This document shows positions 4,290 to 42,703 of a DNA stretch of 64,000 nt, one piece after another. Location: assembly GCF_964204645.1 (NCBI RefSeq), contig NC_134032.1:16232275-16296274 (forward strand). The letters run 5' to 3'. The notes under the pieces were generated by a model that searched no databases, was not told the origin of the DNA, and saw nothing but the letters and a program-made list of their open reading frames with translations. Each line of letters opens with the position of its first letter. Within the stretch, counting starts at the first letter, position 1. Source of the stretch: Tubulanus polymorphus (lineage: Eukaryota > Animalia > Nemertea). The position numbers and the translations under genes were made by a program.

Positions 4290-4783
4290 ACTGAGGAGAG
4301 AGGAGAAGCTAGCAGGAAAGAGGAGATACTGAGGAGCTAGCAGGAAAGAGGAGAGACTAAGGAGCTAGCAGGAGAGAGGAGCTAGCCGGAGAGGAGAGAG
4401 GAGCTAGCAGGACAGAGGAGGGAAGAGCTAGCAGGAAAGAGGAGCTAGCAGGAAAGAGGAGCTAGCAGGAAAGTGGAGGGAAGAGCTAGCAGGAAAGAGG
4501 AGCTAGCAGGAAAGAGGAGAGAATGAGGAGCTAGCAGGAAGGTACAAACTAGCAGGAAGGTACCGACTAGCAGGAAGGTCAGACTAGCAGGAGGGCACCG
4601 ACTAGGAGAGGGTAGAGAGGCCGAAGAGAGGGTAGAGAGGCCGAAGAGAGGGTAGAGAGGCCGAAGAGAGGGTAGAGAGGCCGAAGAGAGGGTAGAGAGG
4701 CCGAAGAGAGGGTAGAGAGGCCGAAGAGAGGGTAGAGAGGCCGAAGAGAGGGTAGAGAGGCCGAAGAGAGGGTAGAGAGGGTA
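4290..4783. repeat. Purine-rich compound minisatellite
   Basis: gaggagctagcaggaaa variants at 4290-4600, then 20-bp gagagggtagagaggccgaa x~8.5. Confidence 0.93.
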
Positions 4784-5224
4784 GTTTTATTCGCAAAACC
4801 TCGGTGTCATTATTTTGAAAGGAGGGAGACACGCGCGAACGGACAATACGCGACTACATCCGCCTAGCAACACGATTAGAACACATAGGCAACAAAGTAC
4901 AAAAATATCAACGGCGATCATTATTGAAATAAAACCGAGACTCTTTCATACATTGAACACGAAACGGCGAAACCGCGACGCGCATAAAATGCATCACGAA
5001 TGAATGAAATTTATCGAATTTGTAGCGGGAGGGACGGGTTTTTTACCGTGGTTTAAAGCGAGGTAGCAGAGTTTGTATAGATCGTGGGAACTATAGCCAG
5101 ATACTAGGTGGAAATGGAGCGCATATTTTTACGCAAGTTTGGGATCATTAGACCTGCTTTCAGTATGGACCCGAGTTCCTGGGTTATAGTGAACTTCCGG
5201 AATCAAAGTTAATCTTTAAATTCA

Positions 5225-5525
5225 TAACCCCCAGTTGGCATAGATTTTTTGTGAGTTAGAATTGGAACTTATGATCCAGTTCCACAGAGTTACTCTGCAA
5301 ACCCAGTTCTACAGTTGTGAGTTAGAGTTAACTGTGAACTCAGGATCCAGTTCCACAGTTGTGAGTTAGAGTCAACTCTGAACTCAGGATACAGTTCCAC
5401 AGTTGTAAGTTAGAGTTAACTCTGAACTCTCGGGATTCAGTTCCACAGTTGTGAGTTAGAGTTAACTGTGAACTCAGGATCCAGTTCCACAGTAATTGTG
5501 ACTTTTAACTGGGTCCTGGTTCCGA
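5225..5525. repeat. ~44-bp tandem repeat derived from a MITE end
   Basis: ggatccagttccacagttgtgagttagagttaactctgaactca x5-6; related sequence at 11120-11210, 20620-20662 (reverse) and ~33170. Confidence 0.8.
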
Positions 5526-5920
5526 AATAAATCTAACTGCCACAATCTCCATCGAGCATTAATCACTGAGTCGTAATCCCTCTAAAACATCGCTTGTCGT
5601 TTCAATCTAAAAATACGATCGCAAAAAATGATCACATTTTTTTCCGACGAGGAGTTTAGAAACTATTGTGGTTTTCATATTTTCGATAGATCGTCCTTTG
5701 ATTATAATTCCCCTCATAAACACGCCCGCAAAATTGTAACCATAAGAAAAACCCGCATTTCTTTGAATTCCTTTCATGTGCGCGCATCGTATTGAAAACG
5801 TTTAGAGATGGTTCTATACATCGAGGTTGGATCATTGGACGGTTATTGTCATGGTAATTGCCTGCCAGTTGGCATACAGCGTGGGAGCCGTTTAGAGCAG
5901 GCGTTCTCACATCACCGACA

Positions 5921-6041
<121 letters not shown>

Positions 6042-7848
6042 GTACAGACCGCGCCAGACCTCGACCGTCGCGACTGTACTGATTCTAAATTCTGTCGCCC
6101 AGTAAAATCCACACTAATTACCGAATTAAACGTTCATAACGCATCACTTCAATAATTAACGCTTTCTCTCTGGAGAGAACTTTTGAAATATCACACGGTC
6201 GCGCAGGTTGACGATACTGTGACGAGAAATCTTCCCTTGCCATCGGCTATAGCCCTTGGATAATATAGCCCTCGTATGGGCCTTGTTAGCCCTCACTGAT
6301 TAAGTTCAACATTTCATCCAAATAATAATTCTGAGTTTATTTCACGGTGCCGATCAATGAAGTTAAGAAGTTACCATTGTCGACTAAATGTTGAAACTTT
6401 CTTATTTTCAATGCACTCAACAAAAACAAAAGTTAATTTGTGAAAGTCTGGCCCAGTGGCGGCGGGGATCCATCCCAATAGTGAGTAGAACGTAGTGAGG
6501 TCCCTGTGTCCGGATGGGGCGATATTTGGGGCTCGACACCAGTCTTTAAGGGCATTTCTTAAGTGCCTGACATGTGACTTTATTTTGTAAAGGTCAAAAA
6601 GAAACGTCGGCCTCGTTTACACTTTATTTGAAAAGACAACAATGGATACTGTTACACGAGGAAGGTCGGTTGTCAAAACGACGACACCTCCTCAGCAGCC
6701 GAATTCATTGCTACTTGTTAATTTACACGTTTAGACAATATGAGTGTGTCGGTCTGTACGTCGGCCTGTCTGCTCTGTCGACATTCCGGCACATGGTCGG
6801 GCCGACGTCTAAACTTGTCACGGCGCGGTTGCGACCCACGTCCGATCATGTTCAACCATTCTGTAGCACTTGTCTCGACAAACGCCCGAACTGCGTTCAA
6901 ACCCCAGATTAAACGACTAAACTGTTTTGATTAGGGGGTGGGTGTGACGCGTGCGCATGCGTCGCCACTCACGTGCACTGCTGAGATTGTTGCTGTTGAG
7001 GTTCCGGGCCCCCAGAGGGTCAGGCTGCAAAACCAGTACACCACCATTCTTATTTAATGTCCGATAAAAAAAATTCAGACCAATTTTAAATCACATATAG
7101 GACTATTTTATTCTCAAATGGCGGCTGTCCCTGAAGCCCCAGGACTCATTCTTACTTTCGCTATTAAATATAAACAGTTAAAATCATTTCATTTTAGCGT
7201 CAACGTTTTAGAATTCAAATCTGAACCGTCAACACTGTTGTAAACTGGATGCTGTGGTTTCCATGTCTCCCGCTGCAGCAGGTGCGTGTGTGGATTTGAA
7301 GGTATTTTACCTGGTGAACGAGGCCATTGTTGATCGCATCGTTTTTCTAGATATTTGTTATTTCATCTTCACAACAGAAAAAAAAATCTTATAAATTACA
7401 ACAATATAATCATCAAACATTACTTCCCTGCATTCCTCTGGATCAATAGAAATACCAAACCTGCCACGTGACTGACACGTGTGGGTGCGGTTGCCGAAAA
7501 GGATCGCTCCGGTTTTGTTGAAAGCCGTAAAAACCGCCCATAGCCCTTGATGTTATTGTACGCGTTTAGTCGCACGAATCTTCAGAGACCCCAATTAGCG
7601 GCTGGGGTATTTAAAAAAAGGCGAAGCGCTGAACCGTGAAACCAGACAGATATGAGTATAAATGCTGCCTGTGAATGAAACATATATTCAATATGTTATG
7701 ACACTGAACGGCGCGGGGACCCTTTGCGTATTGTCTCCGCAATGAAAGAATATTATGAAGATATTCATCTTAAAAGAAATAATAGCTTATCGTGTTATTC
7801 CATCGCCTGCGGTTTTGTATCCCGCGGTGAGTGTGCCCTAAACGCACT

Positions 7849-8154: not shown

Positions 8155-10318
8155 TCTCTGATAGAATTACAAAAAAAGTTGTAACATATATAGTTATAGT
8201 GAAACGTAGATACAACAGTAACAATATATTAGTGTTGAGTATTGTAATGATATACAGCAGGAAACGGCTAGAAAAAGCTTAAAGCTTTTGATATTACAAA
8301 CCCAAGGTCATTCGAAATATGTCAATTCTATCTAAAACTGTCAGAAATCAGACTGCATAATTACTGAGTTACAAAAAACCTCAAAACTACACATTCAAGA
8401 AATCTTGTAAGGCCCTATGGTTCTAGGGAAGGGGAGGGGTGTTAATCAGGGGTCGATCAGGGGACAACGTATGTTTTTTTTGTATATAGAATATAATGAT
8501 ATTCGATTGTGATTGTAGTTAGTCTGTGTGACACACGTTTTGTGTTATCAATTAGATCAATATCTAATACACTCAGTCACTCTAACTACTACCCACGTGG
8601 CCTGCGCAGTCAATCCCGTCGCTGTCACGCCGCTACCTCTTTCACGCTGCCCGCTTTTATCTGAGCATTTTTCGTAATTTCGAAAAAAAAAGGAGCGCGC
8701 CTATAGTTGTGCGACAACACAAAGGCAGACCGGCGCAATGTCAGGTCACGTCTGATGAACAATAGCTCCGTTAGAGAAAGAACCACAACCAGTTGTATAG
8801 TAGTTTCACAAGCACCTGCCCATATACCCCGGATATTAACCTTTAGTTTCTCGGGTCACAACCACCTGCCTGTAGTTAGCTCGTTCATCGCCAGATGGCG
8901 CGGTTATCCGTCGGTTTTTATTAGAAAATAAAGGTTGTTATAGATCGTTTTTTAATTTATTTGTTGTTATAAGTTTTTTTTCAAATTGATACGAAATAAG
9001 ACCAACTGCACAAGCCGGGTCCATAGTCAGGTCTTCTAATTGAAGATCAGTCTAAACCATTTTAGTTCTAAAGCTAACATTTTTAAAACCGCTTTTAGAT
9101 TTACGCCTGGACTATGGAACTAAACCCCTGGAGTAACATTCGTGATGTAACGTCGATTTTGTTGTGACCTTTGGGTCGTAATGGCGAATGTAGCGTCAAT
9201 TTCATAGGTATCAAAATAATGGAATTTTTTTAAATTTTATTTTCAATATCTTATCAATGGACAACTCAAGTTCGTAGGAGTCACTCCCATTTCCGGTTTG
9301 GTATGTCGTCACGTGTTCACACACCGTACGACAGCAGCAGACGGCGAGCGCGTGACAAAATATCGATTAAATCTGATAACGGATCAGAGAGATGAAAGAA
9401 ACCAAACACACAAAAACAACCACTCGAAAAAATCACATTATAATTGTATAGGTTTATATAGATATATAGATGCATTTTGTATTAATGCGCGATCGTTTGG
9501 AGTTGAATGGAAACTCAATAAACGCTTGAACCTATCCTCCCTCCCTCCCTCCCTCCCCTCCCCCTCTGTGTTTTCTAACCCATCCTATAAAATCCATTCA
9601 ACACCTTCCACAGAGCTAGGCTTCGGGTTATCGGGCTGCTAAGGTTTAGGTTATTCATATTGCCGATTTAATTATGAAACGTCCATCTTGTGAAAATCAT
9701 TGTTCTTTTAGAAATAAAGAACTGCATTTGAATGTTTCTAGCAAGCATTGCCAGGTAATAGCACCACAAAGTCTCGAATATCAATTTAAAAATCGGCATC
9801 ATATGGTCAAGTTCAAGGTGACTGTTTCAGCCAGTGAAAACAATCACTGGCAATAGGCTCTAATTGTAACCGTGCCCTACAGTGACTAGATAATTAATAT
9901 TTTATTTTGATCGCGGACCTGTGAAGCAATGAAGCACCGATTCAAAGGCCATCATCGCGTTCTCAATCACGATTAAAAGCTATTTTCTTAAAAGCTTCCT
10001 TTGAAAATTATGAAATGCATTTTGAACTCTACGAGTCTCGGCGTGAATGCGCTGAACTGGTACTCGACAAATTCTAATTGCGACATTAAAACGATATTTT
10101 AAATTTTTTGAAGTTTTTTATTTTCTTTTTGAAGTTCTCGCGAGCAGAGCGGAGTACCACTCACCGGTCGAGCGTCCTCGAAATGTCGACCCCTGGGGGT
10201 GACGGGTGACTCCCTGTGGGATGAAGGGTGACACTCTGCCTGGGGTTGAAGGCAGGCAGGTTGATCCTTGCTCTCTGTACTAGTCACTAAGAGTGACGTA
10301 TTGTGTCACACGTGGAGA

Positions 10319-21313: not shown

Positions 21314-21620
<307 letters not shown>

Positions 21621-27092: not shown

Positions 27093-28643
27093 CTCCCAGT
27101 GCCCGTCTTTCACCCTCACCTCCCAGTGCCTGTCTATCACCCTCACCTCCCAGTGCCCGTCTTTCACCCTCACCTCCCAGTGCCCGTCTTTCACCCTCAC
27201 CTCCCAGTGCCTGTCTTTCACCCTCACCTCCCAGTGCCCGTCTTTCACCCTCACCTCCCAGTGCCCGTCTTTCACCCTCACCTCCCAGTGCCCGTCTTTC
27301 ACCCTCACCTCCCAGTGCCCGTCTTTCACCCTCACCTCCCAGTGCCCGTCTTTCACCCTCACCTCCCAGTGCCTGTCTTTCACCCTCACCTCCCAGTGCC
27401 TGTCTTTCACCCTCACCTCCCAGTGCCTGTCCTTCACCCTCACCTCCCAGTGCCTGTCTTTCACCCTCACCTCCCAGTGCCTGTCTTTCACCCTCACCTC
27501 CCAGTGCCTGTCTTTCACCCTCACCTCCCAGTGCCCGTCTTTCACCCTCACCTCCCAGTGCCCGTCTTTCACCCTCACCTCCCAGTGCCTGTCTTTCACC
27601 CTCACCTCCCAGTGCCCGTCTTTCACCCTCACCTCCCAGTGCCCGTCTTTCACCCTCACCTCCCAGTGCCTGTCTTTCACCCTCACCTCCCAATGCCTGT
27701 CCTTCACCCTCACCTCCCAGTGCCTGTCTTTCACCCTCACCTCCCAGTGCCCGTCTTTCACCCTCACCTCCCAGTGCCTGTCTTTCACCCTCACCTCCCA
27801 GTGCCCGTCTTTCACCCTCACCTCCCAGTGCCCGTCTTTCACCCTCACCTCCCAGTGCCTGTCTTTCACCCTCACCTCCCAGTGCCTGTCTTTCACCCTC
27901 ACCTCCCAGTGCCTGTCTTTCACCCTCACCTCCCAGTGCCTGTCTTTCACCCTCACCTCCCAGTGCCCGTCTTTCACCCTCACCTCCCAGTGCCTGTCTT
28001 TCACCCTCACCTCCCAGTGCCTGTCTTTCACCCTCACCTCCCAGTGCCCGTCTTTCACCCTCACCTCCCAGTGCCTGTCTTTCACCCTCACCTCCCAGTG
28101 CCTGTCTTTCACCCTCACCTCCCAGTGCCTGTCCTTCACCCTCACCTCCCAGTGCCTGTCTTTCACCCTCACCTCCCAGTGCCCGTCTTTCACCCTCACC
28201 TCCCAGTGCCCGTCTTTCACCCTCACCTCCCAGTGCCTGTCTTTCACCCTCACCTCCCAGTGCCCGTCTTTCACCCTCACCTCCCAGTGCCTGTCTTTCA
28301 CCCTCACCTCCCAGTGCCCGTCTTTCACCCTCACCTCCCAGTGCCCGTCTTTCACCCTCACCTCCCAGTGCCTGTCTTTCACCCTCACCTCCCAGTGCCC
28401 GTCTTTCACCCTCACCTCCCAGTGCCTGTCTTTCACCCTCACCTCCCAGTGCCCGTCTTTCACCCTCACCTCCCAGTGCCTGTCTTTCACTCTCACCTCC
28501 CAGTGCATGTCTTTCGCCCTCACCTCCCAGTGCCTGTCTTTCACTCTCACCTCCCAGTGCCTGTCTTTCGCCCTCACCTCCCAGTGCCTGTCTTTCACTC
28601 TCACCTCCCAGTGCCTGTCTTTCACCCTCACCTCCCAGTGCCT
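27093..28643. repeat. 27-bp minisatellite, ~57 copies
   Basis: Unit ctcccagtgcc(c/t)gtctttcaccctcac; source of the four ~540-570 aa spurious ORFs. Confidence 0.97.
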
Positions 28644-28814
28644 GGCTGTACGGCGTTCTCACGGCCGCTGCTGCTGCTGCTGCTGCAAGTGAAAACAAAC
28701 AAACGCGCGGTGCAGACGATTAGTGGTTACATGTGGCGAACAGACGACACTCACATTCCACAGCAGGTTCTCACTTCCGTGATCAGAAAAAAAACTACAA
28801 CGAGATAACAACAG

Positions 28815-29397
28815 CACAGGTCCGGGTCCTCGTGGTCGCCCCCTGGTGGCGAGTAACACAGGTCCGGGTCCTCGTGGTCGCCCCCTGGTGGCGAGTAACA
28901 CAGGTCCGGGTCCTCGTGGTCGCCCCCTGGTGGCGAGTAACACAGGTCCGGGTCCTCGTGGTCGCCCCCTGGTGGCGAGTAACACAGGTCCGGGTCCTCG
29001 TGGTCGCCCCCTGGTGGCGAGTAACACAGGTCCGGGTCCTCGTGGTCGCCCCCTGGTGGCGAGTAACACAGGTCCGGGTCCTCGTGGTCGCCCCCTGGTG
29101 GCGAGTAACACAGGTCCGGGTCCTCGTGGTCGCCCCCTGGTGGCGAGTAACACAGGTCCGGGTCCTCGTGGTCGCCCCCTGGTGGCGAGTAACACAGGTT
29201 CGGGTCCTCGTGGTCGCCCTCTAGCGGCGGCGAGTAACACAGGTCCGGGTCCTCGTAGTCGCCCCTGATGGCGAGTAGCACAGGTCCGGGTCCTCGTGGT
29301 CGCCCCCTAGCGACGAGTAACATAGGTCCGGGTCCTCGTGGTCGCCCCCTAGCGGCGAGTAACACAGGTCCGTGTCCTCGTGGTCGCCCCCTGGTGG
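28815..29397 (-). repeat. 42-bp minisatellite, 14 units, carrying CTCF-consensus motifs
   Basis: Unit cacaggtccgggtcctcgtggtcgccccctggtggcgagtaa; 9 identical and 5 variant units; minus strand reads CCACCAGGGGGCGA. Confidence 0.95.
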
Positions 29398-30089
29398 AAG
29401 AGTGGTAGATACAGCACAATAAGGGTCATTAGTCTTTTCTAGTCATGACTGGAATTGGGTCCCAAAGTTCCACTCCACTCTCCGTATCCCCGCAACCACC
29501 TCCCCTCATCACCACACTGGAGTGTCCCACATTACTCCCCGTACCCCCACAACCCACTCCCCACATCACCACACGGGAGTGTCAATTACTGCCGTATTGA
29601 GTATGAAAAATCATTTCGACTGTTTTTAAACGGACGTTTATAAATATTGTGAGAAGCCGTTCCCGACCAGTTCTAACTGGCTAAATCAGGCCAATCTGAC
29701 ACGTGACAGTATCGCCGCGATTCAAAACATCTGTCTTCAAATACATGTCAACGATCTTAATTCTTGAGGTTCAAATTTAACCAACAGTACATAACTGAGG
29801 TACTGATCTCGGGTCTGGAAATAAATATTTTGTTCTAGAATTTTTTGATTTCATGATAATCATCTTTAAAAAATTCGTGTTGTCCGGTGACTACACCCGG
29901 GGGTCGGGGATGTGACCAGTCGAGGTATCGCCGTCTGCCATGTCAGTGGTTCCTTGGTCGATTTACTCGAGGAAGGAAGTAAAACTTGAAGGAACAAACA
30001 TTCAATTTCTTGTTCCTTCACTTTAACGTAATTTCCACAAGAGCCGCCGCCGCGATCCTTTGTTACGCCGGGTATCGGCGGTTTAGCGC

Positions 30090-30335
30090 TCGGATGTCGC
30101 GGCAGACGTCGTGTAGAATCGAGTCGTCTGCGCGGCACAAGCGTCACGCGCGCACCTGACACGCCCACCTCACATCGCACAACAGCCAATCAGCGCCTAC
30201 ACACACCACCAATCGGCTGCCAATCAATGTGTAACAGATACGGAGCGCTTGGAGGTGAATTTATGTTGCCGAGCGTGGGAAGTGTGATTAGTTGACATCG
30301 CGCCGGCGTCAGGCTTACACACACTCAGTAGCTGC
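30090..30335 (+). promoter_or_regulatory. Hey proximal promoter
   Basis: GC-rich. Three CCAAT boxes (30186, 30209, 30220), a high-affinity CSL/Su(H) site CGTGGGAA (30274-30281) and an Inr-like TCAGT (30325-30329), about 270 bp upstream of the ATG. Confidence 0.7.
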
Positions 30336-30593
30336 AGTCTTATCCGGAAATAAACACGAATTTATACTTGGATTTATTCGAATAATAACTAAGCAACAAA
30401 CGACAACAGACACGACCGTTATTTTATCGATCGGTGTTTCTTTTTGAAAATTTAGGATTATTACGATTATCTCGTCACGCGGCTGCGATTGTTGCTGTTG
30501 CTACGACACACACCAGTAGAGAATTAACGCCCGGTATTGTTATTTATTTGAATTGATTAATTCTACTGTGACGTGTTTTTGATGGTTGTTAGA

Positions 30594-30661
30594 ATGAAAC
30601 GCAGTTTGTCTGAAAGTAGCCTAGAAGGAGACGATGTCTTTGACGAACGCATGAAATCGGG
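30594..30661 (+). CDS. Hey: Hey coding exon 1
   Basis: MKRSLSESS... start typical of Hey proteins; donor GG|gtatgt. Confidence 0.85.
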
Positions 30662-33600
30662 GTATGTTTTGACAAGTTAATTTTTTTTTTTTTTGGGGGG
30701 GGGGGGTAAATTGTCTTATATTTTATCAAGATCGAGTTTTTATCATAAAAAGTTAAACTCATACCTCATATTGTTTACTTCATTTTTTCCAATGGGGATA
30801 ACTATTTAAACTAAGATCACTATTCACTTCTGAAATTGAGTTATGAATTTGTAGTTTAGTAACTTCGTTAAAAAGCTAATCTCTCAAATCTCACTATCTT
30901 ATCTTTCTTTTAGTACAGTTATTAAAAACTTTTTGGTAAAAACTAATTATCTTTTATTTATGAAAACTCGATGAATAGGTCAATGTTTTCTGTCACGTAT
31001 TCTAAGATTTTTTTTAAATTTTTTTTTAGATCACCATCTCAAAGTTGTAATGTATCGGACCGTAAAAAACGACGAGGGGTAAGTCATACTATCATATTAT
31101 CATTATCATCATTATCATTATCATAATTATTGTTATTATCCATTTTCTGGTAAAATAATGACAATATATAAAATGATGCAACAGTGATAATATATTTTAG
31201 CATAATATGTTGTAATAAAACAGTGGGGAAAAGCTGGAAAAGCTTCAAGCTTGTGAAATAACAAACCTCGCCTCATATTCATTCTGACTCTAGGATACAA
31301 ATCTATAATAACTATATGTAACTATAGCAGTACAAACTCTAGCAATGGCCTATTTGTGCTACACAGATACTTAGATAAAAACATCTTCCTTCAGTTTTCT
31401 AGGTGATAACACTAGTATTCCTGAGTATGACTATTCGAAACGTCGAATAAAGTGTTACCGGTTTTAGCTTTAGGGAACATTTTTAATTTTCTAATTCCTG
31501 TTGCGAGGTTTCATATCATACCTTTTTCAAAATCACGGACACAAAATGGGACCAATATAATTGACAGAAATATCTTTCGGTAGCACAGTAATCAGGTAAT
31601 GGGTTAGACTATAGATTACTGGTCAGAAATTCAGCGAGCTCCTCTGGTCAGTACTTCAGTGGGCTGCGCTGGTCAGTTGGTCTGTACTTCAGTGGGCTCC
31701 TCTGATATGGTCTGATAGTGTCCATGGTCTTCTGATAAAGCCCCCCGTGATTAGTACAATACTGTTAAACAGGAAATTAACTCGTAGATTATAAATAAAA
31801 CCCTTTCCTAAATCTTCACATTCGAAACCGCAATCAGCCTGACAACACGAACTGCGGCATGCGAGCGCGACTCTGCGCCCCAACAATGCGTATGCAAATA
31901 TTGCTTTAATATGCAAATGAGGTAGTGTTATCTGTCGCGGTGCAGCCAGTCACTCAAAGCGACCATCAATCAATAATAATAGGAACAGGTAATAGACACG
32001 CAAATAATCTCATTCGGGATTTAGGATTAACGACCGCTAATCCGTGTAAACATAAGCAGACTGATAATCCCCAGATCCCCAATATAGATCCTCTCGTAAT
32101 TCTAAACAATCATCATCAATAAACTCATTTGTTTAAAATGAACCGGATATAGATATTTGAATGTGATGGTTTTAGAAAATGTTCTTATTTGATTTTTCTA
32201 TTTTTTAAATTTCGCAGATTATTGAAAAAAGGCGTCGAGATCGAATAAACAACAGTCTGTCCGAACTGCGTCGACTTGTACCAACTGCCTTCGAAAAACA
32301 GGTATGTACATGTTATTGTTTGCTGCTTTACACACCCCCCCCCCCCGACCACCCCTAACCCCCTACCCCTACCCCCTCCCCGCCTCTAGGATATTGAGGA
32401 GTCGACTGATTATCATCTCAAATATCAAAATACGTTACTTTTGATTGTAAATGAATTTAGAAATACGAATTGAGACTCAAAAATCGAGATGACTTCAGTA
32501 ATGTAACTGCTTATCCGAATGATGACTTACACTTAGTAAATTGAATTAGAAATATAAATTGAGACTCAAAAATGACTTGAGCAATGTGACGACTTATCCT
32601 AAATGATGATTTCAGTAATTAACATATCTGCTGTTAATTAGTAATTAGTGCGATGGCACGAAACGGGCACCGGCGGGTCGCTGATGAAAGCTCGTTTCTC
32701 GTCAGGTCAACAGTGCCAGTAAACACTGCGCACAACAGACACAGTTTCCCACGCGTGGTACAGTAATCACGCACACTCTCAGCGAGTTGAGTTACTCCAG
32801 ATGTGCTGCGCTGTAACTAGCGATAAAAATCAGTACCAACACGTGCGCGCGTGCGCATGCGCTCCGTGTGTACATCGGTGTCGTCTGCCAGCGCGCACCT
32901 GTTCGCGCACCTGTTACTCCACCAACAACTACAACCTGAAAATATGCAGTTTGTAATCATTAAGATGACGCGTGTTCCTGACCTTGAAAATGTATTATTT
33001 CTGGATTTTTAGGGTTCAGCGAAACTGGAAAAAGCCGAAATACTTCAGATGACCGTCGATCACCTGAAAATGTTACATCAAAAAGGTAATTTTCATAATT
33101 TTTCTTCATGAAAAAAAAACTGATAACAGCAATGCCATTAGGAAAGCGTGGGTCAGGTGTGGAAGATTCCACAGTTCCACAGTTCTGGCTGTAAACAAGT
33201 TGTCTTTAAAAACCACTAGATTCTCAAATTTCAAAATTCTAATTGAGATCTGTTAAACCTGGACCAGAACCAAGATCCATTGTCTCAAATAGGGGTCGTA
33301 ATTAGGACTGGATCCAAATTGTACTCAGCCTGGCTAAATCGAAGTCACGACTCAAAGGTGCCGCAATTTGCGATATTGAAAAAGCCCGCATCATAACCTG
33401 ATGAAATCGATTAGTGTGACGGTCGTTCCCAGCGCGGTGCTGGCGGTGATGCTACTAACCTGAGTCCATACAATAGATGATTCCAATTTATCACACACAG
33501 TGTCCATGAGAGCAGATCGTACTAAACAAAATCCTTTACAATCAGAATGATACATCTTTATTTGAAAAACGGTGACCATTATAATTCACTAGTCGAGCCG

Positions 33601-35666
33601 CCAGTGGACAGGGCTGATCGGGAGCGACCGTGGGAATATTCCTCAGCTAAATAAACCACTCAGTTTAGAGAGAAATTTAGATGTGAGACAGGCTTTCATC
33701 GGCTTCTAACAACTTAAGACTAGTTATAAACTCATTTTGGTTCTATAATCAATCTATCAACTTAAGACCAGTCTAAACTCATTTAGTTTTTTAGCCAATT
33801 TAAGGCAACTTAAGACCAGTCTAAACTCATTTTGGTTCTATAACCAATCTAACAACTTAAGACCAGTCTAAACTCATTTTAGTTCTTTAGCCAATTTAAG
33901 GCAACTTAAGACCAGTTTATGCTCATTTTAGTTCTATAACCAATCTAACAACTTAAGACCAGTCTAAATTCATTTTGGTTCTATAACCAATCTAACAACC
34001 TAAGACCAGTCTATGTGAAATATGATCTCGCGCCGTCTGCTGTGGTCGTTTAGCGCCTCGCGACCGAATCAATGTTTATTTGCGCATAAAAATATGAATC
34101 GTTTTTCGAGTCCCACTCGACTCCACACTGCGAAATCTTATCGTGGAGCTGTTGAACAGACAGGGCCCCGGTAGTCGTCGATACGGGGAATCCAGTGTTT
34201 CGGGCACCATAAACATGATCATCGCTATGCCCAGTTCAATTACGCATCAGAAATGGAATAAAACTTGAGTTTATTATAATGGAAGATATAGTAGGGCGGG
34301 CGGGCGGGCGGGAACAGGTCGAGCCATTAAACAAATAAAAGCGACGACTATGTTGTTGATGTTGATGTATAGAAAGAGCGGTTAGATGTTATCTATGCTT
34401 CCATTATTCATGTCGCTATCTGGAGAGCGGTTCCCACGCCGCTTGTTCGTGAGAGTCGACCCGATCATCACGTAGTCTCTCTATAGAGTAGCGGACACCT
34501 GTCCTATATATACTCACCTGCCAGTCGTTAAACAAACTATAGGCAGGCGAGGTTAGCGCGATATTGGCGTTATGCCGGGCGGGCTCGCGGGTTCTGGCCC
34601 TGTAGGTATTTACTCAGAAAGTGTAACTATTTTTAAAAAAGTGTATTCATTTAGTTGTTCTACAAAACGAACCAGTTTCAGACCAGTCAAACTATTTACT
34701 ATTGCCATGAGGCAACGGGCCAAATACCCTTCAATATCAGCTGGACACTACTAAACCTGGGGCTCGGGACCCCTGGACCTGGGGCTCGGGACCCCTGGAC
34801 CTGGGGCTCGGTACCCCTGAACCTGGGGCTCGGTACCCCTGAACCTGGGGCTCGGTACCCCTGGACCTGGGGCCCGGGACCCCTGGACCTGGGGCTCGGT
34901 ACCCACTAGAACTCGGTTATGTTATCAATGTAACTAAATGTATATATAATGTTCTATAATTACAGGTTTGAACAGTAACTATTACCCGGACCCGCACACG
35001 TTAGCGATGGATTACAGAAGTGTAGGATTCAGAGAAGCGGCCGCTGAAATCGCTCGCTATCTGGTCACAGTCGAAGGCCTCGATATCCAGGATCCGTTAC
35101 GATTACGACTAATGAGTCATTTACAATGTTTCTCCACGCAACGAGAGATGCATCATACAAAAACGAACATTCAAACTCCCGCCGCCGCCTGGAATTCCGC
35201 CATGTCGTCTGCTCATATCGGACTGAATTCACAACCGTACGGCTCCACACAACCTTCGACCACTTCCATAATCAGCCAACACAACGCGCAGAACGACCAG
35301 CTTAGTATGGCCACGCATACCGGAACTCCTCTGACGTCAATGTCCTGCACTGAAGCGCGTACGCAGCCACTGGACACTATGACGTCAAATCTGACCAATC
35401 ACATGAGAATTCCTACGACCGGAAGTATAGCTCCACAAGTACCGAGCGTTTCCTCTTCCGGTGCGCAGATGTCCGGTCTAGGACTACCCACAATTCCACA
35501 GGTACATACGCAATATCCGGCTTCGCTCGGCATAAACAGCGCGTCTATGACGAGCATGCTTAATTCATCAGATAGTGGCTCCCCCTACGGGAATATTAGC
35601 ATGCACCCGCATTCTCAGGGGGGTTTAAAACCTTATCGGCCGTGGGGGGCCGAGCTAGCTTACTAA
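30594..35666 (+). CDS. Hey: Hairy/enhancer-of-split related with YRPW motif (Hey) bHLH-Orange transcriptional repressor, 5 exons, 324 aa
   Basis: join(30594..30661,31030..31078,32218..32301,33013..33085,34966..35666) = 975 nt. All introns are GT-AG with phases 2,0,0,1. Protein: [144 protein letters not shown]...[12 protein letters not shown]. Gly in the basic region, an Orange domain and a C-terminal YRPW are diagnostic of Hey. An in-frame ATG at 30582 could add MVVR. Confidence 0.97.
31030..31078 (+). CDS. Hey: Hey coding exon 2 (start of basic region)
   Basis: Poly-T/ag acceptor; [16 protein letters not shown]; donor gtaagt. Confidence 0.95.
32218..32301 (+). CDS. Hey: Hey coding exon 3 (basic region and helix 1)
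   Basis: ttcgcag|[28 protein letters not shown]|gtatgt. Confidence 0.97.
32640..32930. promoter_or_regulatory. Candidate Notch-responsive enhancer in Hey intron 3
   Basis: GC-rich island in an AT-rich intron: CSL site TTCCCACG 32746-32753, CACGTG 32840, TGCGCATGCGC 32852-32862, TCGTCTGC 32881, two CACCTG E-boxes at 32896 and 32908. Confidence 0.55.
33013..33085 (+). CDS. Hey: Hey coding exon 4 (loop and helix 2)
   Basis: ttttag|[24 protein letters not shown]|gtaatt. Confidence 0.97.
33629..34438. promoter_or_regulatory. CSL/Su(H) sites in Hey intron 4
   Basis: CGTGGGAA 33629-33636 and TTCCCACG 34431-34438. Confidence 0.5.
33712..34012 (-). repeat. Tandemly amplified internal segment of MITE family B (~47 bp x6) in Hey intron 4
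   Basis: acttaagaccagtctaaactcattttggttctataaccaatctaaca repeated. Confidence 0.85.
34755..34905. repeat. 22-bp minisatellite, ~7 copies, Hey intron 4
   Basis: acctggggctcgg(g/t)acccctg(g/a). Confidence 0.93.
34966..35666 (+). CDS. Hey: Hey coding exon 5 (Orange domain, S/T/P-rich region, YRPW)
   Basis: ttacag acceptor; matches ORF 34968..35666 ending [10 protein letters not shown]. Confidence 0.97.
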
Positions 35667-37280
35667 CACCGATCTCAATACAAATTCATTTTATTACCGG
35701 CTAAGAAAAGGCAGTTTATCTATAAAATATTATTTCGATATTTATATTTCCAGCGCCACGGATTCGAACCGACTTATGCGCCCCCTGCCGGACATTTTCG
35801 TTACTAGTCTACTCGACGCCGCGTAGTGGTGGTGATTAGAACTGAGAGAGCTATCACGTGACTCCGTCGCCGAAATCTAACCGAAACTAGTCTTTATACA
35901 CAGAGAGAAAGAGATATATGAATATTCGGCCGATAGATGGCGCGCGCGCGTAGTGGACCCTGCATTTATTTATTTATTATACTCGATGTGCTCGGATAAA
36001 AACAATCGGTAGAAATTGCTCAATTCCGCGCCTTGAATGAAACGTATTTCCTGTGACGGTGAAGCCTCGTTATGATGAACTCGGCAGTAATGGCGATTTA
36101 TCGCTTATTACAAAAATAGAATTACATCCCAAACGTGAACAATTCTCACATAACCGATAACAGATTTCCAGGTCTCCTGAAGTTAGTTGTAACGAGGTTC
36201 CGCTGTATGACGTCACGAATACATAACCCGTCATGAATATTGATTATGTTTGAATCATTTTCTAATAGTTCAGGGGGCGCTGCAGTTGCTCAGAGGTTAA
36301 CAATTGGATAGTTGAAGATAAGTTCGTTGTTACTATGGTATTTATCCGTCGGATTATCTTGAACCAATCTTTAAGTAACTGCGGTCCCTGTCATTTAACG
36401 TTAATGACATTTTATGATTTTTTTCTCGCTGGGACTCGAACCCGATCGCCTGGGTTCGAATCCCAGCAGCAGAGGATATTGCCGCTCTCCTTTCAACAAC
36501 TCAACTTCCCTATACATAATCTTTACGCTTAAATTATTGAAAATCTTATTTTAATTTATTTTCATCGTATTATACTCTGAATAGAATAGGGTTGGAAAGT
36601 AGCTGCTGCTGCTGCCACCTACCGGTATAATTGTAACCTCAATGACAGAAATTAACATACCGTCAGTGCGCGGATAACTATGTGCCTTACTCACTTACAA
36701 CTATGCAATTACTGATATCACACATTATATAATTAAATGCATTTATATCAAATATTGTGTTTAAAATGAAACATTTTGTTTGTATAATTTAAAAAATACT
36801 GTGACAATTCCATATAAGGTATAAAGCACACACTGTGTGTAGACAGGTGCGTGTGTAATGTGCTTCCATGAACTGTCAAAAATTAGGGATTCGAACCCAC
36901 TCGACTATTGTCGCTACTCACGTCAAGTTACTAAGCTTCCGGTTATTTAATCATAACCTTTAAAGCCGATCTGCCCCGGACGTTTCGATAGGTCTTCCTA
37001 ACATGGGGTTGTGTTTATAAATCGGGTGTTGCTCAAGGGGACGTATTTGCACCTCTGATGTTCGGGGTATAATTTTGCATTTATCATACATGACCTTGAA
37101 CTTGAAGAATGTGTTTTTTTACTACGATTATTTTTTCTACGACGAACAAACAAATATAACGTACAAATATAGTTCACTTTTGTGCCTTTTTTAAGATTTG
37201 TAAATAAAAACAAATTTTTGTATATAAAGCTATTTTACAACATGAATTTCTATTAAAAATATATAAAATTGAAAAAAAAA
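35667..37280 (+). other. Hey 3' UTR (approximate)
   Basis: AT-rich after the stop. AATAAA at 37203 and ATTAAA at 37252 are followed by a GT/T-rich tract at ~37288-37313. Confidence 0.55.
36271..36390. mobile_element. MITE (family A) in the Hey 3' UTR
   Basis: cagggggcgctgcagttgct...agtaactgcggtccctg; core shared with the 15365 copy. Confidence 0.7.
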
Positions 37281-37815: not shown

Positions 37816-40190
37816 TCCTAACGCGTAATAACTGTTATTTCCCATGACCTATAGTTTAACGAGTGACAATACCACGGGTTACTCACGTGGGCGATACAAC
37901 GGGAGTGAGCTCGGTAGAAAAAAACGCCCACAGATAACACAATTCACGGTGATATTTTTTCCTAAGAAGTCAAAAGCTCGCTCGCGTGTATTCTCATATT
38001 TTGACTGGAGACGCAACCGTTTATAGAAATATGTGGTTTTCTAACGTGTGTTCATTGTCCCCCGGTCAAACGCGTTGCGAAAGTCGTCAAAAAACTGATT
38101 CCCGGATTTAGCGTCGCTTCGACAAACAAACAACAATCCGTTTCCTCCAACTGTTCGTTACTAGACGGAAGTCGTATTTCGAACTGCGCAATTTTCAAAT
38201 TAACGCTCAATAGAGTCTCGTGATTATAGTCGCTTTCAAATTTACCGAACCGTACAAAACGACGATGATTCAGTTTTATTTATCAAAAAGCACGAAAATA
38301 AATCATCAATTCTAGGTCTATTCGCATTCTACCTATTGTCAAACTATTGGTCAGAATTACAGGGAGCAATTTACCCCTCCCCCCGGGACTGGTTCCATCC
38401 TACTGAACGCTCGACTTTGGAACTCTGTAATCGCCTCAGCTTGCACCATTAGCTTATGCTTTCGGACATTGTATTATCATCATTACAATTCGAAAACTGA
38501 TCGTCTGCTCTTGAGGAAGGGGTGGGGAGTGTTAGCATGATGATTTCAGTCTGTTGATTCATTGTGATGGGTTGAACCCGATTTACAACAACAATGGAAC
38601 ATAGTTTATAAAACTATCTACAACAATGAGACATGTTTCTATAAATGTTTTTCTGATAATGTAACGGTCGTAAGTCGTCGTTATCGTTACGTAACGATTA
38701 AACGGGACCTAATGGATGATTAGTAACCAAGAAACCACTTAACAATCAAAGTCAATTGATCGCTGCGTTCGTTCTAAACAGCGTGACGTCCACTATTACG
38801 TCAGAGAATGATTAATTAACGGCCAGTGCTCGAAGGGTTTCCATAATCTTCACCCGTTGACGTCTTGTCAAATCTTTGGATTTACCCAACTCCTGAAGTC
38901 AACAGAATGGATTTTCTGTTTAACAGGTCCAGTTCGAAACTCCTAATAGTGGGTAATTCGATTCATGAAACCATAGCAATAACGGATGCGTTATTTTGAA
39001 TGAAATACCGGTCGTTATTGTTGAATTATTTCCCATCAGTCACTGGTTTAAATTATCGACTCAAATATGAAAATGTTAATAAGTAAATCCAATTATCGCA
39101 GGTTTTAATGGATGTTGTTTACCAGGCAGACGATCAAACTGATGAATATGTTTTTATGTATGATGGCTTGTATACAGAGTGGATTTGGTCTGGGGGCCCC
39201 GGGGCTTCATTCAGCTGTTCACACTGACCATAAACCCTCGAGCACAAACCCCTGCGGCCCAAACCCTCATTCATTACCGACTTGCCCTAGGGCAATGTCC
39301 ATTAACCACAGGTCCCATCCTATTGTCGTCTAGATTGCGTCTTGTTTGCTTTGTAAAGTCCGCGAGAAAGATGTTGTCTTTTCACCGGCTGACCACCGCA
39401 TTGTTGCATTCAACGTTTCGTCAATCGGCTTTTGTCTCCTTCCGGTACGGTTAACTCTAACGATCGGATCGGACGGCGAAACGACGAGAGATAAGGGTTT
39501 CATTTTCCCGTCTCGATTTCTGCCCACGAGCATCAGAAGGCCACCGGGCGATTCAACCCCCGGATATCCGGCGCTGTCTTCAGTCATTTATCAATCTTGC
39601 GTAAAATGAGATAAGCCAGACGGTACAGAGACATCTGCTGCCCCCTAGCGGGATAGTTGGATACTATTGGGTTTGCGCGATGCCAGTCCGTCCAGAAATA
39701 GTCAGGCATACCGAGACTCGGTGGCCATACGGTGTTGAGTTTTGGACTCGTAAAAGTTCATGATTTGACGCTGAGGTTTTAAAGTAGGTAAAATAGAATA
39801 AACGAATATCACATATCCAAGGAAACCGATCATTGTATTCAAATTACTAGAATTTGTTGAGAGAGTTTTAACAAAAGACTAAATTGATTAAAAGCCGCGC
39901 ATATGGAACTGACTGTCGTGGCACGTGATTCAAACCAGCACTAATCTGTTTGCTGTAAATATTTATCGAGGACCGGATTTTAAACCGAATTCAAACATGG
40001 GTTTGTCAGCGGCATCGCAATCAAAATAGCCCAGAGAGATGGGTGAGGCCCAGACAGCCCCAGGGCTGATGCATTGACGAGTAAAATCCAGTCAGGGAGT
40101 GATGTATTATTAGGTCCATCCTTGAAGAATTCTACCCAACTTTCACTGTATCTGACAATGTAGATAGGGTCAGTCCAGTTAAATATAAAT

Positions 40191-41337: not shown

Positions 41338-42219
41338 ATGAACTGACTATAGTTAATTCAATAACAGGTTTAGACTGCGTTCATCAAAGGGGAATTAATC
41401 AGACCCGACTGAGGTATAGCTATTAATTAATATCAATGATGACCAGTGCGCGGGCAGCTCCACAGCTGTTTGCTCTATAATTGCTATTGTTGTCCACCTT
41501 CCCCTGATCTAACGATTACTTTGATATAATTGTTCACCTTCCCCTGAATCGCGGCGCCTTTCACTAATATAGTAGTATCACGTGACAGTATCGACCTTCC
41601 TGGCGCCATATTAGATAACTACACTAATCCCTTATAGACAGTTCAGTATTTCATGAAATCTACAAATCTGATATTATTAGTGAGATATCACATTTCTAGA
41701 AAATCTACAAATCTGATATTACTAGTGAGATATCAAATTTCATGAAATCCCTCATAACTGACATTACAAGATTTCACAGAAACTAATGTGATTCACCCAA
41801 AGATCACCAGAGGGCACTTTGAACCTCCGGTTTACGCGTTATCACTATATCATGACCACTGATGGGTCGAGATATTAGATGATTTTTGAGATTATGTAGT
41901 TCACCTACATACCACTAGGAGGCTGTTTTCTAAATAGGGATTAACCCTGTTATTTATCTAGTATTTCTAAGAGGCCAATCGAACCCAAGAATGCGTGGGG
42001 AATGGACAGTGCGTTAAAGCCCGAAACCCACAACATCTCGTCTGCGACCCGAACCGTCTGTGAAACATATAGCGCTCACCAGGGGGCGTAACTAACTACC
42101 GACCCCGCAGGTCATTAGAATACGATCCACAGTCAAGTGAACATCGTTAATTATTAGCTGCAGTGAATTGAACACTTTCACTGAGAGCGCGCGGACAGCA
42201 GTGAGATTCTCACATTGGC

Positions 42220-42703
42220 CTCCTCTCTCTCTACCTCCTCTCTCTACCTCTCCCTCCTCTCTCTACCCCTCCCTCTCCCCCTCTCTCTCCCTCCTCTCTC
42301 CCCCTCTCTCTCTACCTCCTCTCTCTCCTCTCTCTACCTCTCCCTCCACTCTCCCCCTCTCCCTCCTCTCTCTACCTCCTCTCTCTCCCTCTCCCTCCTC
42401 TCTCTCTTCCCCTCCCTCCTTTCTCTCCCCCTCTCCCTCCTCTCCCCCTCTCTCTCCCTCCTCTCTCCCCCTCTCCCTCTCTCCCTCCTCTCTCCCCCTC
42501 TCCCTCCTCTCTCCTCTCCCTCCTCTCTCTCCCCTCTCTCCCCTCCCCCTCTCCCTCCTCTCTCTCTACCTCCTCTCTCTCCTCTCCCTCCTCTCTCTCC
42601 TCTCTCTCTCCCCTCTACCTCCTCTCTCCCTCCTCTCTCTACCTCTTCCTCCTCTCTCCCCCTCTCCCTCCTCTCTCTCCTCTCTCTCTCCCCTTCTCTC
42701 TCC
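42220..42703. repeat. C/T-rich low-complexity polypyrimidine tract
   Basis: About 480 bp, almost exclusively C and T. Confidence 0.97.

Follow-up and report, generated by a model that had tools for sequence, protein, structure and literature searches.

The window (the whole 64-kb stretch of DNA analysed here, to which all positions below refer) contains on its plus strand a set of exons encoding a bHLH-Orange protein, with HLH and Hairy_orange domains, a YRPW tail and canonical splice sites. The exons were searched singly rather than as a joined protein, and they bear out the identification of this gene as Hey in the initial annotation. Hey is a typical Notch-target gene. Upstream of it lies a minisatellite whose units carry CTCF-type core motifs, and single cores of the same type follow the gene. 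CTCF cores were scored as the degenerate IUPAC consensus CCRSYAGRKGGCR. The features are as follows.

28815-29192, minus strand: array units 1-9, 100% identical, each with the core CCACCAGGGGGCGA
29193-29397, minus strand: array units 10-14, the diverged end, on the Hey side
30000-30500, plus strand: CpG-rich stretch, GC up to 0.56, CpG observed/expected 1.5-1.8
30594-30661, plus strand: coding part of Hey exon 1 (MKRSLSESS...), followed by a GT donor
31031-31078, plus strand: Hey exon 2, ending SDRKKRRG, with AG acceptor and GTAAGT donor
32218-32301, plus strand: Hey exon 3, first half of the bHLH domain (PF00010, E 1.7e-08)
33013-33087, plus strand: Hey exon 4, second half of the bHLH domain (PF00010, E 8.4e-06)
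about 34968-35666, plus strand: Hey exon 5 (last), Orange domain (PF07527, E 7.5e-11) and YRPW tail
35779-35791, minus strand: single core CCGGCAGGGGGCG, 113 bp past the Hey stop codon
36613-36625, minus strand: single core CCGGTAGGTGGCA, a match to CCRSYAGRKGGCR
39639-39651, minus strand: single core CCGCTAGGGGGCA, a match to CCRSYAGRKGGCR

The Hey ATG is at 30594, and the array ends 1,197 bp before it. The CpG-rich stretch is likely to be the Hey promoter or 5' UTR. If the promoter is placed there, the array lies 0.6-1.1 kb from it, and the earlier figure of about 1 kb for its distance from the promoter, on the upstream side, is roughly right. No convincing ORF was found in positions 1-27000 of the window, and the gene-free region upstream of Hey extends over ~29 kb and is filled with minisatellites. 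A gene-free region of this size beside a developmental gene is a place where a boundary or a tether would make sense, and this speaks against a purely neutral reading of the array.

TRF resolved the array as 13.8 head-to-tail copies with a 42-bp period, 94% matches and a score of 1041, at 28815-29397, corresponding to C8:16,261,089-16,261,671 of the assembly. A unit-by-unit split divides it into 14 units, 0.58 kb overall, and confirms the 14-unit, 42-bp minisatellite of uniform orientation that had been described at the outset. On the minus strand, each of units 1-9 reads TTACTCG-CCACCAGGGGGCGA-CCACGAGGACCCGGACCTGTG. At the diverged end, unit 10 carries the core CCGCTAGAGGGCGA and, with 3 bp inserted beside it, is 45 bp long, unit 11 has a broken core in which one G is missing and core position 4 is changed from C to T, units 12 and 13 carry the minus-strand cores TCGCTAGGGGGCGA and CCGCTAGGGGGCGA, respectively, and unit 14 is truncated and carries CCACCAGGGGGCGA. 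The variants that the initial annotation listed for units 10, 12, 13 and 14 are all reproduced by the split. Its statement that unit 11 alone had lost a base is correct for the missing G, but left out both the additional C>T change and the insertion in unit 10. Open reading frames run through the repeat on both strands; they are artefacts of a period that is a multiple of three and have no gene context, and a coding origin of the array was rejected.

The array core agrees with the canonical CTCF consensus at 13 of 13 positions. Over the 64 kb of the window there are 15 matches to CCRSYAGRKGGCR, where shuffled sequence leads to an expectation of 0.02, and all 15 are on the minus strand. Twelve of these are in the array and three are downstream of Hey. 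Thus 12 of the 14 units fit the consensus, all on the minus strand and in one orientation, which upholds the earlier claim that the units hold consensus-grade CTCF cores pointing the same way.

Such an arrangement invites the reading that the array was selected as a strong CTCF insulator or loop anchor with many sites, placed between Hey and the sequence upstream of it, orientation-dependent and tuned by copy number. Taking all of the evidence together, we regard this as unlikely, and the points on either side are given below as they arise. In its favour at this stage are the 12 consensus cores in one orientation, the position of the array, which is unique in the genome (see below), on the border of 29 kb of ORF-free sequence and 0.6-1.2 kb before Hey, and the three further minus-strand cores just past the 3' end of the gene. 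If the vertebrate orientation rule held in this animal, the motifs, being on the minus strand, would point towards the gene-free region upstream, and under that rule a promoter-proximal tether would be at least as plausible as an insulator.

The exact core at 35779-35791 has a one-mismatch partner on the plus strand at 35930-35942, and the two form a divergent pair spanning 113-264 bp past the Hey stop codon. The array and this divergent pair bracket the Hey gene body with CTCF motifs. A further one-mismatch core, TCGCCAGATGGCG, is present on the plus strand at 8888-8900, ~20 kb upstream; it is weak, and would be convergent with the array if the vertebrate rule were applied.

The region upstream of Hey is a minisatellite hot zone. 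The background was taken from the window, a random 200-kb genome sample and genome-wide tallies of control patterns. TRF gave 81 rows in the window, where tandem repeats make up 17% of the sequence, compared with 5.9% of the random 200-kb sample; for arrays with periods of 28-58 bp, the figures are 9.0% and 2.8%, respectively. The window is thus ~3-fold richer in tandem repeats than the random sample.

A 27-bp minisatellite (CTCCCAGTGCCTGTCTTTCACCCTCAC) at 27093-28644, with 57.5 copies that are 96% identical, lies 170 bp upstream of the CTCF array. It is followed by a short (GCT)n run, and together with the CTCF array these make up a 2.3-kb repeat block before Hey. Long simple repeats elsewhere in the window include a perfect (CAG)44 at 2100-2233, an (AG)140 at 21318-21592 and a CT-rich tract of ~480 bp at 42219-42703.

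In such surroundings the array might be an ordinary GC-rich minisatellite whose motif is without consequence, either unoccupied in vivo (nucleosomal, methylated or heterochromatic) or read by another factor. We think this improbable, although the 81 TRF rows and the 27-bp array close by speak for it. Each array unit contains four CpGs, which could be methylated, and this too is in keeping with an unoccupied repeat. The CpG observed/expected ratio within the array is ~0.8-0.85, however, and this lack of depletion argues against heavy germline methylation. The agreement of the core with the canonical consensus at every position also weighs against a motif without consequence.

The unit is confined to this locus. 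BLAST with 168 bp of the array returned matches here alone, and a genome-wide search with the 28-nt non-core spacer, allowing up to 3 mismatches, gave 13 matches, all within the array. A dispersed-repeat origin of the unit was therefore ruled out; the initial annotation had named a common dispersed repeat as one of the findings that would overturn its interpretation, and the spacer search shows that the unit is not one. The confinement of the spacer to this locus also indicates that the array arose independently of the other CTCF-core arrays described below.

Public short-read data from three runs of one study, none of them recorded as RNA and all in the form of assembled contigs, were compared over positions 28400-34300. 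In the best of the three runs, the k-mer depth in the array flanks is ~10, as for single-copy sequence. Over the array the contigs collapse, no record spans it, and the contigs showed no spliced joints in the compared interval. The array is probably length-polymorphic among individuals.

The same comparison picks out two very high-copy repeats in introns 3 and 4 of Hey, at 32340-32733 and 33705-34112. Their summed k-mer depths are ~9,000 and ~90,000-230,000, respectively, compared with ~10 in the flanks. The repeat at 33705-34112 is a satellite with a 47-bp unit and is probably among the most abundant repeats of the genome.

The genome encodes CTCF. A gene with 11 zinc fingers is present at C3:3425001-3435000, and a degenerate pattern for the finger-4 peptide CDYASVExSKL has a single match in the genome, at this locus. 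A degenerate pattern for RRYKHTHEKPF had no genomic match; the worm protein reads VRYRHTHEKPH at that place. The exons, at ~4359-7208 of the 10-kb locus, encode fingers 1-4, 5-9 and 10-11, the first of them continuing from a long N-terminal exon part. The exons were searched separately and not joined. In a PDB search, the best match of the finger 1-4 exon was human CTCF (7w1m_H, residues 266-375, E 2.4e-68), as was that of the finger 5-9 exon (7w1m_H, residues 376-519, E 2.4e-61), and these two exons are co-linear with the human protein. The absence of CTCF from the species was thus ruled out.

Fingers 3-7 read the CTCF core in published CTCF-DNA structures. The recognition helices were compared as the seven residues before the first zinc-binding His, taken from the alignments. 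Finger 3 (7/7), finger 4 (6/7) and finger 5 (7/7) are identical or nearly so to the human helices, 20 of 21 residues together, whereas finger 6 (3/7) and finger 7 (4/7) are less similar. The finger-6 helix is QSNSLKA in the worm and QSGTMKM in human. The initial annotation had proposed confirming that the genome encodes CTCF, and the gene on C3, with helices in fingers 3-5 close to identical to those of human, does so. A CTCF gene with conserved fingers is one of the points that favour a loop anchor or insulator at the array.

The genome also makes wide use of the core. The 13-mer core occurs at 5,082 genomic sites (2,559 plus and 2,523 minus), ~1 per 53 kb, compared with 64 sites for the reversed 13-mer, a 79-fold enrichment. 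The exact 14-mer of the array occurs at 77 sites, where its reversed control has none and ~0.5 would be expected from base composition. With these two reversed controls, a chance origin of the motif was ruled out, and the core instance in the array is very unlikely to be an accident of composition. The 13-mer enrichment shows use or amplification of the motif and not its occupancy. The ~80-fold genome-wide enrichment counts in favour of an anchor. It also bears against a motif without consequence, since composition accounts for only ~1% of core instances and the seed of the array very probably belonged to a motif class that is in use.

Among the first 100 sites listed, the commonest core variants are CCACCAGGGGGCG and CCACCAGATGGCG. 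The core ending in GCGC has 64 genomic sites, mostly singletons. The core ending in GCGA, which is the array type, has 77 sites, of which 10 are in the array and ~35 in clusters on C10. The 14th base is thus somewhat preferred as C over the A of the array. Both the less favoured A and the tendency of GCGA sites to lie in clusters (~45 of 77, with the GCGC sites mostly singletons) speak for the reading in which the array is a repeat of no consequence for CTCF, which we nevertheless consider improbable in view of the composition, CpG and consensus evidence above.

Tandem arrays of CTCF cores are not peculiar to Hey. Same-strand pairs of 13-mer cores 15-45 bp apart number 188 genome-wide, against 0 for the reversed control. 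They fall at ~95 loci whose spacers are mutually unrelated, which implies that these ~95 arrays arose independently of one another. Other examples are at C6:18507776 (period 32 bp), C4:1213713 (29 bp) and C10:10765912 (44 bp). In the first 100 matches listed, no other locus reaches the 10 tandem pairs of the array at Hey. For a composition-matched control, the reversed 10-mer and the true 10-mer were each counted singly and as tandem pairs.

Reversed 10-mer (control): 4,350 sites, 130 tandem pairs, 3.0% with a partner
True 10-mer core: 17,502 sites, 835 tandem pairs, 4.8% with a partner
True 13-mer core: 5,082 sites, 188 tandem pairs, 3.7% with a partner

Relative to this control, the odds ratio is 1.25 for the 13-mer (p = 0.06) and 1.6 for the 10-mer core (p = 1e-7), the latter a modest but significant excess. 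Counted by loci, the excess of tandem partners may be about 2-fold. Thus CTCF cores occur in short-period arrays at near the rate of motifs of like composition, with at most a modest excess. The occurrence of such arrays at ~95 loci, close to the control rate, tells against a selected anchor at this one. The partner excess of the 10-mer leaves room for some selection for CTCF-site duplication, or some mutational bias towards it, which may have contributed. With so high a rate of minisatellite birth in the genome, the existence of the array requires only a pre-existing site.

The pattern of change within the array was then compared between core and spacer. Across the diverged units 10-14, 10 of 70 nt differ in the 14-nt core, compared with 6 of 133 nt in the spacer (Fisher p = 0.025), although the numbers are small. 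Counted as independent events, the core shows ~6 over its 14 positions and the spacer 6 over its 28. Variation is thus higher in the core, the opposite of what is expected for a motif kept by selection. The core is unprotected and shows no sign of purifying selection, an observation that stands against a selected anchor.

Three of the five core substitutions reach bases tolerated by the consensus (A>G at position 3, C>T at position 5 and G>A at position 8), and these swaps could reflect constraint. All three are transitions, and the probability of such an outcome by chance is ~0.07 by a hand estimate. That several core variants remain within the consensus is a point in favour of an anchor.

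The nine identical units imply that the expansion, or the last homogenisation, of the array was very recent. The present dose of 14 sites cannot be an old, conserved feature, and the multiplicity on which a strong anchor would depend is itself very young.

A CTCF footprint covers roughly 40-50 bp. The 42-bp spacing of the cores is about one footprint, or four helical turns, and would probably prevent simultaneous occupancy of all units. Full occupancy of the array is therefore doubtful, a further difficulty for a multi-site anchor.

The array resembles the mammalian DXZ4/Dxz4, Firre and H19 ICR loci in having tandem units with a CTCF motif in each, in one orientation, at a position where a boundary or anchor is plausible. 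It differs from them in its unit of 42 bp, about one footprint, where theirs measure hundreds of bp to 3 kb, and in its total length of 0.58 kb and its very young age. Its host, too, is a spiralian, a group in which oriented CTCF looping is unproven. The mammalian comparisons, which the initial annotation drew, are fair as analogies and would not be transferable as such to a ribbon worm. After deletion of the CTCF-rich Firre locus, its TAD boundary was preserved (PMC5899154), and this too counts against a strong anchor at Hey.

Closer in kind are human VNTRs that multiply predicted CTCF sites, such as the HRNR repeat, for which an effect of copy number on folding has been proposed (PMC10234305). 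This proposal lends some support to an anchor at Hey, and in both cases the effect on folding is conjectural. The HRNR repeat differs from the array in being coding, in having longer units and in coming with population and expression data (PMC10234305). Compared with the other CTCF-core arrays of the same genome, the array at Hey has the common core and the head-to-tail layout, with periods across the set of 28-58 bp, but it has a unique spacer and lies beside the promoter of a developmental gene. With ordinary neutral minisatellites (VNTRs) the array shares a unique locus, a short unit (here 42 bp), a homogeneous stretch that gives way to diverged copies at one end, a minisatellite-dense region and a frequency about that of control-motif arrays. 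What sets the array apart from ordinary VNTRs is that its unit holds a high-information motif of a conserved architectural protein that the genome demonstrably uses.

Outside vertebrates, looping that depends on CTCF orientation is unproven. A 2023 review describes TAD formation by loop extrusion in invertebrates as being without direct evidence, and the spiralian evidence that it gives is solely an enrichment of CTCF sites at squid TAD borders (PMC10658181). In a 2026 echinoderm study, CTCF motifs were enriched at boundaries but not at loop anchors, and their orientation followed no pattern (PMC13317027). Both sources weigh against an anchor whose action depends on orientation.

We thus lean, with moderate confidence, towards the explanation that the array is a young, locus-specific minisatellite in which neutral expansion multiplied a CTCF-type site that already existed upstream of Hey. 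A 42-bp segment with such a site, lying some 1 kb before the Hey promoter, would have been tandemly duplicated, in a genome that makes minisatellites very readily, and the product would be a redundant CTCF platform beside the promoter. From the conservation of the core-reading fingers with human CTCF and the genome-wide use of the core, it follows that CTCF could probably bind at least 12 of the 14 units. That there are so many copies is most likely a neutral side effect of repeat expansion, rather than the mark of a selected 'super-anchor'.

The anchor or insulator interpretation of the initial annotation accordingly survives in part. The cores, the CTCF gene, the ~80-fold enrichment and the non-dispersed unit all stand; the strong anchor does not fit well with an array rate like that of the control, a core more variable than its spacer and a recent expansion. 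In its most specific form, a selected, copy-number-variable CTCF 'super-site' that would stall cohesin arriving from the 29-kb upstream region and so tether or insulate the Hey promoter, the idea appears very unlikely to us. Were it true, CTCF anchoring of the vertebrate kind, dependent on orientation, would be at work in a spiralian, and boundary strength could be tuned quickly in evolution through minisatellite expansion.

As one of about a hundred arrays, and explicable by repeat dynamics alone, the locus is a candidate and not a discovery. It bears on the question of whether oriented CTCF loop anchoring was present in the bilaterian ancestor, to which the answer is no from flies and echinoderms and yes from vertebrates, while spiralians have hardly been studied (PMC10658181, PMC13317027). 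The natural arrays of this genome, with 2 to 14 sites in the same orientation, would be convenient subjects for contact mapping.

The search with the control motif also brought up a dispersed family with a tandem unit of ~50 bp (GTGGATCACCCTTATATAGAGTGGCTGGGATCGAGGGGCCGCGTGTGTGC). Among its many loci are C1:15889366, C5:14560418, C6:11022150 and C8:11105823, and the family probably represents an array internal to a transposon.
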